A stretch of 63,793 bases of DNA, filler included, from Lenisia limosa (taxonomy: Eukaryota > Protista > Breviatea): NCBI GenBank assembly GCA_001655205.1. It is 11 parts of 11 records of this genome, joined end to end, with 100 filler letters (N's around TTAATTAATTAA, not from the genome) between each part and the next. Parts side by side here need not be neighbours in the genome. Positions count along the whole stretch, not along the records: positions 55,096 to 59,321 come from LPNZ01003440.1; 10 more parts are not named here. The stretch is one strand, 5' to 3'. Shown here piece after piece: positions 54,813-59,050 of the stretch. Position numbers and translations under genes: made by a program. Numbering within the stretch: position 1 is the first letter of the stretch; each line of letters starts with the position of its first letter. The notes beneath the pieces are model-generated. The model was not told where the DNA came from and did no database searches. It saw nothing but the letters and a program-made list of their open reading frames with translations.

Positions 54813-55307
54813 CGTAAGTGGGCTATTGTATATACAGTGGCCAGGATAAGTCATAACAGATTTGCTCTGTGATTTCGCAAGAAAAATAAGTCAATATTTA
54901 TTCCTGTGTGATATGTTGTACTATATAAATAACTATACTATATGATATTTATGTGTGCTATGGGGCAAAAACACTGCCATTAAATCATTTTTCCGNNNNN
55001 NNNNNNNNNNNNNNNNNNNNNNNNNNNNNNNNNNNNNNNTTAATTAATTAANNNNNNNNNNNNNNNNNNNNNNNNNNNNNNNNNNNNNNNNNNNNACAGA
55101 GTTGATTTGGGTTTTTTTTGTTTCATAAATTTTCCAATTTTACTCCCCCCTCCCCCTCATCTTCAATCTAAAAATAGTGCAAATCAGCAAGCGTTCCCCC
55201 AAAAAGTTCATATTTCTCGTTTCTTGACATCGGATTATTGGGGAAAATTTTGAGTAAAGAGGTTCAGCCGTGAGCTTAGACATACGTTGTTAATTGTCGT
55301 ATTAACG

Positions 55308-57107
55308 CGATCAGGCAGTGAATTGTTCCGAGGCTACGTTGGAGAGGGTGAAGCACTTATCAGAGAAACATTCGCAGAAGCAAGGAAGGTGGAGGGGTAC
55401 GAAGAAAGGAAGTGTGTGGAGGTTATGGAAACAAAAACTGATTCCTCCTGTGCCATTTTTTGAAGTATTCTTGACAATTTGACAATTCTGTCTCATGATA
55501 CTCTTTCTAATGAGCTTAACCTCTTCAGGAATCCCCGTCGGTTGTTATTTTGGACCATTTTGAGTTGATTGCCCCTACCAGAGGCAAGGGGGGTTCTAAT
55601 ACATATCGATATACGATATGATACGATGGACTATACTAAAGTATACGATATGATATGATGTGGTAATTTGTGTTTATAATCCCAAAGTATTTTATTATTC
55701 TCGTATCCCTAGGTTTTATTTATTGCTAAATTTTTACTCGCAAACTTTTTTTATATACAGAGTTGCTGAATGAATAAATATAACCCCCTGTCTTGTCGGA
55801 TGACCACATAACAACTGCAGGATTAGGAGAAGGAGCGTGTTCGTCAGTAGCAGGCCGTTTGCTTTCAATGCTTCTCAATGAGATGGATGGAATCAGTGCC
55901 ACGCTGGAATGCCTTGATTTTGAAACTGTTGCNNNNNNNNNNNNNNNNNNNNNNNNNNNNNNNNNNNNNNNNNNNNNNNNNNNNNNNNNNNNNNNNNNNN
56001 NNNNNNNNNNNNNNNNNNNNNNNNNNNNNNNNNNNNNNNNNNNNNNNNNNNNNTCTGTTCGAAGCTGTGGATCGGTAGATTATTCACTCGTCAACTTCAG
56101 ACTCAGACTGACCGTGATAAGTCATAACATGGATAGGGAGCAGTCAATCTCAAATAAACATCTTTTGAGAAGAAAGCATACATGCTTTTTACCGCCTTAG
56201 AAGAGTTCAAGTGATTGGAGTCACAAGCCGGCCGGATCTCTTGGATCCTGCTATTCTTCGTCCAGGTTGGAGAGAAATTATACCATTCAGGGAAATTTTT
56301 CCCATTTATTATGTGATCACTCATCATAATGTAACAATTTGTTACTAGGGTGTAACTCAGAGTTGTGTAAGGGACATTAAAAAACCCATATAAATGTGAG
56401 GGTGTGGACAGCTTTGGCCACACACCCTTATTTTTCTTGTACCAACAAACAATGATTTTGTTAGGGCGTCTGGACCTTCATGTGGGCTTTGATTGGCCAA
56501 CTTACGATACTCGGTGGGGGGCTTCACTTCAATGAAAACGGAATTTCTTGCTCAATAGTGTATTCGTAAAACCCACGGCCATTTTGTTACTTCGCAGGCT
56601 CGAGATGCTTGCCTATTTGATGCCCAATGAAGACGCAACGTTTCTGTCAGTTGCTGCTGAGGCCTCTGAAGGCTTTGTGTTCCAAGACCTCTTTTCGGCT
56701 GTAAAGTGAGCGGGTCTCTTTTTGGCAGTTAAGGGGGGGAGGTAAACCTCCTTTGAGTAGGATGTTGTTTTAAAAATGTTTTAGCATTGGGATTTTAGAT
56801 ATTGATCCTAGGGTTGACCAACAAGCCCTTTTCAGTATAATTTCAAATACAGCTCTCCTCCTTGATACTGTAATACCTTTAGAGCTTCCCTGCTCAAAAA
56901 ATATCAATATTTTAAGTCTTTTTCGACCGCAAGCCCAAAATAAATACCTTCCCATTCATTGAATCTAACTTGTTAAGCAAGTTGAAGATTCTGGGACTGC
57001 CTGGAGCTGCAGAGAAGCTTGCTTGTCTGTCTGCCCATGTTCCAATCTATTCACCTGATGAGGTGCAAACAATGAAGGACAAGTTTGCGCCATTTCAAAG
57101 CAAGTAG
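55308..57107 (+). CDS. CDC48-family AAA+ ATPase, C-terminal (D2) module; SPATA5/AFG2-like subfamily uncertain; 5' part missing
   Basis: GSELFRGYVGEGEALIRETFAEAR, SPSVVILDHFE (degenerate Walker B), RLLSMLLNEMDGI, VIGVTSRPDLLDPAILRPGRLD; stop TAG at 57105-07. Confidence 0.85.
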
Positions 57108-57357
57108 CTTTCGGAGTGAAAGTGATTGCTTTCTTTTAAACTTGATAGATAAGTTTTTTAGAATGTGTGCTTATTTCCCTATTTTGCGAAGTTTCAACTA
57201 AATGGTGCTGCAATGCCTTTACACTCCAACGTTGGTCCAAACGAATCTTTCAGCGATCTGAGTCCAGTGCTAGTCCAGTGCTTATTATAAGGCCCGACAC
57301 AGATTATCAAGGCAGGAATGATAAGAGTAAATAAGTATATTCGCAACTAGAGACGGT

Positions 57358-58529
57358 TTAGATCTGAAGAGCGGGGATTTTGCCGCGGAGGGGCATGGGG
57401 TGGCCAGCGAAAGACTTGGGGACACATTGGGCGTGGGTGAGGTCACAGGAGTATCCCTTGGGGCAGCAAGAGGTCNNNNNNNNNNNNNNNNNNNNNNNNN
57501 NNNNNNNNNNNNNNNNNNNNNNNNNNNNNNNNNNNNNNNNNNNNNNNNNNNNNNNNNNNNNNNNNNNNNNNNNNNNNNNNNNNNNNNNNNNNNNNNNNNN
57601 NNNNNNNNNNNNNGACTAGTCAATCGCAACCCCATTGATAACAACGAAAAAAAAAAGAAGAATAGCCAACAGACCAGCAAGTGGCTTCAGGGTAGGGGCA
57701 GCAGCCGTAAGAGCCAGAAGAGAGCATGCAGCAGGTGGTGCCGTCCTAAGCAATCACGAAAACTCAACTAATCATGTAATGTCATCTCAATCTTACTAAA
57801 CTCATTAAAGCCTATCATTAGCCATAGAAGTTTAACTTCCCAAGTATGCCCATTTGATGAGTCCTTATTCCAGAGATAGAACTTAGAATATGAAATGCCA
57901 AGTCCTGATTCCAGAGCAATAAAACAGTCAAAAATGATGTTTGGTCCGCTCCACAAACAGGGCAGGCAGACTTCTCGTCACACTCAACGTTCATGACCTT
58001 CTCGGGCTTGCAGAGCTTGATGGCTTCGCAAACCTAAAGGGTGAATTCGGGTCTTTTGAATAAACAAAAGCCAGGATCGGGCTGAATAAAATATGCTGTT
58101 GTTTCGGGGAGGGAGGGGAAGTGGGCTCACCTTTTGGGGTGGTAAATCGTCATAAAGGTAGTCAATGATAGAAGGAGCGTAGAGCTGGACAATGGTGGCA
58201 CAGAGACCAGACTCGGACTTAGGGAGCTTCTCGCAGAACTATGGTGTCAAAAATATGTCCAATTTTCACATAAAGAGAATATTTATCAAGCTAAAGTACG
58301 TCAAAGCAGATTAAACCCAAACTAACATCGTTGATCAAAAAGTCCTCGAGTTCGCCAATTCCATGGTCAATAATGAATTCCTCAGTTTTGTTGGCAACCT
58401 GGAGACTAAAAAGGTCAAGAAACACCGGGCAAATGAAAAGCAATAGAGCACTACGTACCAGAGCTCGCAGTAGGGTGACGCAACTGTGAAAGAGATCAAA
58501 GCAAAGAGTAAAACAAGAACTTTAAACAT
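57358..58529 (-). CDS. Secreted saposin B-granulin fusion protein, multi-exon
   Basis: Signal peptide [17 protein letters not shown]; six-Cys saposin [15 protein letters not shown]...[44 protein letters not shown]; granulin [31 protein letters not shown][gap][17 protein letters not shown]. Confidence 0.85.
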
Positions 58530-58717
58530 CTTGAAGTGTTTTTTTCATTTTCATTTTTTGTTTTTATACTCGACGTGAGCGTCAACGCCAAAACTTCTTT
58601 TTCTAGCAAAAACCGCCCCTCCAACACCCCTCTCTTTGTATATGTGTAATAAAGAAGTGTGTTGACCGGTGGCTGAGAAGAATTAAAGAAAAGCAAAGTC
58701 GGCACCTCATTTTCATC

Positions 58718-59050
58718 ATGAGTGAGGAAGCTAAAACGCTTCCTCCTATGTGTGCAATAGAGTTCCCTGGCTATTTAAAAGATCCAAATGACCCATCACT
58801 TGCACTTAAAGCACTGGGAGGAGAAAAAGTTATTGCCCAGGTTGGTTGACTTATATTTTGTAACAGATTGTAATTGTAGTATTCTGTTAGATTAAGACAA
58901 GATCATATGATATGCGTTGTTCTGAGTGCCTAGGCCGAATTAAACGTTTCTGTCAACTTGCATCCCAACGATCCGGTGGCAAGATCATCACTTCGGCTCA
59001 GGCGCGAGAGAATTGAGCAGAACAACACGTTTCTTCTTTCAGTTTCGTCT
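58718..59050 (+). CDS. GTF3C5: TFIIIC subunit tau95/Sfc1 N-terminus (partial)
   Basis: MCAIEFPGYLKDP...ALKALGGEKVIAQ...NLHPNDPVAR...NTFLLSV matches the tau95 N-terminal IEYPG...LGG...P-x-DP pattern. Confidence 0.75.

Follow-up and report, generated by a model that had tools for sequence, protein, structure and literature searches.

In the breviate protist Lenisia limosa, a single spliced gene encodes a saposin B (SapB) domain and a granulin module in one polypeptide. The gene lies on the minus strand of the window, by which we mean the whole stretch of 63,793 nucleotides analyzed here (assembly GCA_001655205.1, filler included), and falls within the part of it that comes from record LPNZ01003440.1 (55,096 to 59,321). 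An assembled RNA contig passes through all of its exons, which confirms that the expressed fusion gene is real and that a single mRNA encodes both domains. With respect to the pairing of the domains, our searches were limited and their negatives are weak; within that scope, the protein represents a new combination of two known modules, of which no second instance was found.

The gene runs from an ATG at 58529 to a TAA stop codon at 57360-57358 and comprises six exons, which together provide a coding sequence of 531 nt for a protein of 176 residues with 18 cysteines. Exon 1 (58459-58529; this and all further exons and introns on the minus strand) carries the start codon (58529-58527), a signal peptide of 17 residues, the first saposin cysteine and two nucleotides of the codon for the second. 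Intron 1 (58406-58458, 53 nt) is followed by exon 2 (58327-58405), which encodes the region of saposin helices 1-2 together with an NKT sequon, and intron 2 (58239-58326, 88 nt) by exon 3 (58131-58238), in which saposin Cys 3 and Cys 4 are located. Beyond intron 3 (58034-58130, 97 nt) lies the junction exon, exon 4 (57959-58033), where the last two saposin cysteines (C-x5-C), a linker of nine residues between the last saposin cysteine and the first granulin cysteine, and granulin Cys 1-2 succeed one another uninterrupted. The domain junction is thus contained within one exon, and the fusion depends neither on splicing nor on the assembly gap described below. Intron 4 (57746-57958, 213 nt) separates granulin Cys 2 from Cys 3, and exon 5 (57675-57745) encodes granulin Cys 3-7 along with two nucleotides of the Cys 8 codon. 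Introns 1-4 are all of the GT..AG type with consistent phases. Intron 5 likewise opens with GT, its visible start occupying 57614-57674, and its acceptor, with roughly the remaining 200 nt, falls in an assembly gap (57476-57613, written as 138 N) that conceals the 3' part of this intron and the first nine nucleotides of exon 6. The visible part of exon 6 (57358-57475) encodes granulin Cys 9-12, a tail of 21 residues past the last cysteine (57361-57423) and the stop codon.

The gene model was compared over 57100-58800 with contigs from two sequencing runs of a single study, one of DNA and the other of polyA RNA; the RNA evidence consists of one assembled contig and not of raw reads. This contig, 569 nt in length, spans 58501 to 57319 with five joints, every one of which falls exactly on a predicted exon border (the first at 58405/58459). 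It leaves out the first 28 nt of the coding sequence, ATG included, and covers 58501-58459 only of exon 1. The initial annotation had proposed one gene with one spliced mRNA and had considered that transcripts might end before about 57750, with saposin and granulin exons in separate mRNAs; the contig continues through every exon, and the single mRNA stands. At 57319 the contig stops and sequencing-adapter letters come next, from which the 3' untranslated part (57319-57357) measures at least 39 nt.

The gap is bridged by both contigs. Between 57675 and 57475 the RNA contig has nine letters that are absent from the window, reading on the coding strand ..TG/C GAG GAC AA/G.. (Cys-Glu-Asp-Lys), and the sequence it gives across the gap is ..ATCCEDKTSCC.., in frame. 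Since the nine hidden letters are in frame, the reading is continuous over the gap and the granulin module gains the CC-x5-CC step that it would otherwise lack. The contig from the DNA run also crosses the gap, with 209 letters against the 138 N of the assembly, and this length indicates that intron 5 measures about 261 nt and that exon 6 begins nine nucleotides inside the gap. The word depth of the RNA contig is 1886, against 31 for the contig of a neighboring gene in the same run, and by this poor measure of expression the saposin-granulin mRNA appears abundant. The RNA library is labeled metatranscriptomic, which suggests that mixed organisms contributed to it.

With the gap closed in this way, the product begins with a signal peptide and goes on to a SapB domain and a granulin module, both complete. 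The initial annotation had read these three parts, with a portion of the granulin in the gap, and both the cysteine pattern and the coordinates given there were correct. The leader is a hydrophobic signal peptide of 17 residues with the n-region MFK, a hydrophobic core and a cleavage-type site, TVA/S. The six cysteines that follow are spaced 2-27-10-24-5 (C-x2-C-x27-C-x10-C-x24-C-x5-C), and the saposin region is acidic, with a pI of 4.4, 15 D+E against 7 K+R, and the one NKT sequon. The granulin cysteines are spaced 5-5-0-8-0-6-0-5-0-5-6, nine letters having been taken from the RNA contig, and thereby form a canonical 12-Cys module of the pattern C-x5-6-C-x5-CC-x8-CC-x6-CC-x5-CC-x4-5-C-x5-6-C. 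The tail that closes the protein is basic, its final 19 residues having a pI of 11. There is a single SapB domain with no further Cys pattern, and the protein is not a tandem-saposin chain of the prosaposin kind; nor is it a granulin-only chain of the progranulin kind, as its single granulin module has a SapB domain before it.

A Pfam scan had been suggested as a check on the domain assignment and, conducted exon by exon, matched both SapB_2 and Granulin. Exon 3 alone matched SapB_2, the profile for the C-terminal part of the domain (E 2.5e-4, 21.6 bits against a curated cut-off of 21). Exon 5 alone matched positions 1-20 of the 42 in the Granulin profile (E 1.5e-6, 28.7 bits against a cut-off of 20.9), and exon 6 alone matched positions 26-42 at a score just below the cut-off (E 6.6e-4, 20.2 bits); the five profile positions that separate the two matches are those given by the RNA contig. 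[quoted passage not shown] In that alignment, the spliced SapB region pairs without gaps, over all six cysteines, with residues 113-188 of P0031, a "saposin-related" repeat (46 bits), which provides independent support for the splice chain.

Compared with solved structures, exon 3 was most similar to human saposin C, aligning to its residues 35-69, and exons 5 and 6 were closest to human granulins. By sequence, the saposin part would be classed as prosaposin-type rather than as obviously amoebapore-like. The granulin module aligns locally with P0132 at 79 bits (38 of 55 residues identical) and with a module from a Hartmannella vermiformis EST (supplement of PMC4527844) at 35 of 53, or 66-69% identity to protist progranulin modules; over the small protist progranulins compared, its identity is 56-69%. 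Scores close to those of the H. vermiformis modules are also reached by tick and JGI proteins. The nine hidden letters restore the CC-x5-CC consensus, with D-K as in relatives.

One of the closest granulin relatives, P0124, is a two-module progranulin that is intronless in six JGI metagenome contigs (L121-L126, 3001-3501), where it sits beside AMPK-beta-like and protein-kinase genes; its tail also has ..FPLRQIK... The lack of introns and the different neighbors indicate that it belongs to a different organism, an intron-poor eukaryote that recurs in those samples. Multi-module granulins (P0111, P0112, P0120, P0157) were also seen in the EukProt transcriptomes of Mantamonas plastica, the ancyromonad Fabomonas tropica, Paradermamoeba levis and Dermamoeba algensis, a spread among protists wider than that in the 2015 survey (PMC4527844).

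The protein differs from known systems that contain either module. With human PSAP/saposin C and the Anaeramoeba flamelloides protein KAJ3427530.1 it shares a six-Cys SapB domain that is acidic, predicted to be secreted and furnished with an N-glycosylation sequon, but it has one saposin domain in place of 2-21 repeats, lacks SapA domains and continues into a granulin. With the small protist progranulins (Hartmannella/Vermamoeba vermiformis EST, Capsaspora Grn, Mantamonas, Dermamoeba, Fabomonas) it shares the 12-Cys module, the signal peptide and a short end tail, whereas its module is single, is preceded by a saposin domain and is split by introns at other places. A split at the Cys 6/Cys 7 boundary is common to animals and slime molds (PMC4527844). 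That split into N and C exons, which a granulin domain need not have, is not seen in this gene, whose granulin introns lie after Cys 2, between Cys 2 and Cys 3 (phase 0), and inside the Cys 8 codon (phase 2); accordingly, either the classical N/C exon pair was not intact when the module arrived or the introns have since moved. The slime-mold Grn consists of a leader, a short N-terminal polypeptide and one module (PMC4527844), and Dictyostelium Grn (130 aa) is similar to the present protein in having a leader, a non-granulin N-terminal part and one granulin module. The likeness ends with that N-terminal part, described as a short polypeptide, since the 130 aa of Dictyostelium Grn in total leave no room for a full saposin domain, while the present protein has a complete SapB domain there and a tail at its other end.

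Granulin modules joined to non-granulin parts are on record in a plant papain-like protease, a choanoflagellate SGNH/lipase-like protein and a Thecamonas BPI-like protein (PMC4527844, Palfree et al.); the plant papain-like proteases with a granulin domain, which the initial annotation had listed as established, are thereby confirmed. The text of the same survey does not mention saposin (PMC4527844). The present protein resembles the plant RD21-type proteases and the choanoflagellate and Thecamonas examples in that a secreted or vacuolar-lysosomal protein bears one C-terminal granulin. The Thecamonas partner is likewise a lipid-binding, antibacterial-type fold, but the partner here is saposin B; and the plant module has two extra cysteines, whereas the module here is of the animal/protist 12-Cys type. 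Saposin-like domains, for their part, are fused to another lysosomal/vacuolar protein in the plant-specific insert (swaposin) of aspartic proteases (PMC8683733). The swaposin is circularly permuted and inserted in a protease, in contrast to the standard-order, N-terminal domain found here, which is accompanied by no enzyme.

Several searches were made for the same architecture elsewhere. An exhaustive profile search with exon 3 returned 110 matches, all of them multi-repeat saposin proteins (2-21 repeats), and a granulin motif was present in none of the 110; the same search gave no match to the protein itself or to an orthologue, so that the library searched lacks the proteome of this organism. 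The mature product, bearing X at the gap, was also used for a word search of a large protein collection, and none of the five candidates was significant. Even strong granulin relatives escaped this search, and its outcome means no more than that a close relative of comparable length is not recorded there. Three H. vermiformis modules (PMC4527844), joined without linkers, served as a granulin query in a further word search that yielded 381 matches, among them proteins of Mantamonas, Paradermamoeba, Dermamoeba, Fabomonas, Capsaspora and many animals. The 120 of these that were listed are all granulin-only and have no SapB similarity, a weak negative in that single-module fusions would rank lower. 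Exon 3, exon 6 and P0124 were each queried against the ESM Atlas and recovered saposin, granulin and protease-plus-granulin sets only, with no mixed saposin and granulin set among them, and a degenerate exon-3 pattern had zero matches in a metagenome scan. A metagenome scan by Cys spacing (SapB C-terminal half plus granulin N-terminal half) was less discriminating, producing at least 120 loci that were discarded as chance matches, as none of their frames resembled SapB or granulin. We did not find a saposin-granulin fusion described in the literature.

As to what such a protein might do, we think it probable, arguing by analogy, that this genuine protein-coding gene specifies a SapB protein with a C-terminal accessory granulin, and that its role is endolysosomal/phagosomal or extracellular. 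The product would enter the secretory pathway and reach the endolysosomal or phagosomal lumen or the outside of the cell, where its acidic SapB domain may bind or lift membrane lipids in the manner of lysosomal saposins. The granulin module and tail could then act as a C-terminal accessory for sorting, stabilization or protease modulation, comparable to that of plant papain-like proteases and the Thecamonas BPI-like protein, and the short linker may be cut to yield separate saposin and granulin peptides. The fusion would most likely have arisen via lineage-specific domain shuffling of prosaposin-like and progranulin-like genes. Because granulin is known behind unrelated secretory/lysosomal proteins, its reading as a generic accessory module is at least as likely as an ancient coupling to saposin. 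The list of C-terminal-granulin proteins (protease, lipase-like, BPI-like) hereby gains a second lipid-binding fold, which points to a general endolysosomal accessory role of granulin; should the architecture be confined to one lineage, it would represent ordinary protist domain shuffling.

Prosaposin (PSAP) and progranulin (PGRN) are lysosomal precursors. Current work on GRN-linked dementia and lysosomal storage disease has their mutual binding and joint traffic at its core, and to our knowledge the reason why the two are partners is not understood. A natural protein with one saposin and one granulin is a small testable object in this regard, in which contact between the folds, joint sorting by the tail and lysosomal cleavage can be approached together. 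That PGRN and PSAP bind and co-traffic, which the initial annotation had quoted as established, is confirmed in the literature (PMC12297828), and with this published binding the present case has the form of a Rosetta stone, i.e., two domains fused in one genome whose separate homologues interact in another. The covalent link might report an old physical and functional partnership, as between animal PSAP and PGRN, in which each would help to bring the other to lysosomes and both would handle lipids together. In favor of this, the fusion exists and is expressed, its SapB part is prosaposin-like, and PGRN and PSAP do carry each other to lysosomes (PMC12297828). Moreover, the last 11 residues of the tail are faintly like the sortilin-binding end of human PGRN, ..PLRDPALRQLL (PMC3115958), but this likeness is weak, since 418 of 20000 shuffles reach the alignment score (p about 0.02), and other small granulin proteins vary in their tails. 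Mammalian PGRN, however, contacts the stretch of PSAP that links saposin B to saposin C and not a saposin fold (PMC12297828), so that the fusion and the known interface do not correspond, and the joining of granulin to unrelated partners marks it as a promiscuous C-terminal module. We consider this reading unlikely. The data permit it and do not support it: the "ancient functional coupling" put forward by the initial annotation finds no backing in an architecture that was met only here, in one instance, and that was absent from the 110 closest saposin-repeat proteins, from the 120 listed small granulin proteins of several protist lineages and of animals, and from the ESM Atlas sets.

Proteins of the amoebapore/NK-lysin type are stand-alone, pore-forming peptides of about 77 aa that are usually cationic or His-switched. 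The SapB domain of the present protein might be such a pore former, employed in killing ingested bacteria, with the granulin serving as pro-piece or inhibitor until its removal in the phagosome. Pore-forming saposin-like proteins are many in bacterivorous protists (PMC5890168, PMC11542183), the Thecamonas BPI-like protein of antibacterial type has a granulin module (PMC4527844), and the protein itself has a signal peptide and, in the RNA library labeled metatranscriptomic, expression that is apparently high. Set against this are the charge and kinship of the domain, which is acidic and bears a glycosylation sequon, and whose nearest kin are prosaposin-like proteins of the multi-repeat kind and human saposin C, not known pore formers. 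Judged from its composition and relatives, an acidic prosaposin-like domain would fit a pore-forming role less well, and we likewise hold such a role to be unlikely.

Frontotemporal dementia and ceroid lipofuscinosis are conditions in which the PSAP-PGRN complex for lysosomal delivery is of importance. It is conceivable, if rather improbable, that SapB and granulin folds are natural binding partners whose pairing was kept or reinvented here in one chain and that the basic tail is a Vps10/sortilin-type sorting signal comparable to the end of human PGRN; were both to hold, this 176-residue protein would provide a minimal tractable model of the complex. Finally, an artefact, whether from sequence wrongly joined at the N gap, from an RNA contig that is chimeric or from the reading of two adjacent genes as a single one, which is very improbable even with a gap inside the gene whose length is written wrong (138 vs. 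209) and RNA support that is an assembled contig and not reads, is already contradicted by a saposin-granulin junction within one exon (57959-58033) far from the gap, by the position of the granulin N-terminal half on the saposin-exon side of the gap, by the independent bridging of the gap by DNA and RNA contigs, by hidden letters that restore a consensus step with the D-K of relatives, and by joints that all fall on predicted borders in a single frame with GT..AG at introns 1-4.

A SapB protein with an accessory granulin is the reading that we favor, and its gene sits in a tight cluster. On the plus strand, a multi-exon AAA-ATPase-like gene (55287-57107) is identified by a weak Pfam AAA match on one exon and by the motifs NEMDGI and SRPDLLDPAILRPG in others; it has an N gap of its own (55933-56053) and ends near 57107, tail-to-tail with the saposin-granulin gene and about 210 nt from the 3' end of the latter. 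On the other side, an open frame on the plus strand (58718-59016), with a faintly Tau95/TFIIIC-subunit-like N-terminus (E 0.23), is divergently oriented at about 190 nt from the saposin-granulin ATG, and a separate RNA contig, that of depth 31, covers 58650-58800. Short introns and short spacers together point to a compact, intron-bearing eukaryotic genome, probably that of a protist. Within the divergent spacer, TATAAAA on the minus strand (58562-58568), 33-39 nt upstream of the ATG, is a possible core promoter, as judged from the sequence. Two out-of-frame ATGs (58546-58554, minus strand) precede the start codon by 17-25 nt, in a region without RNA cover, and would open a 10-codon overlapping frame; given the position of TATAAAA, transcription may begin downstream of both.
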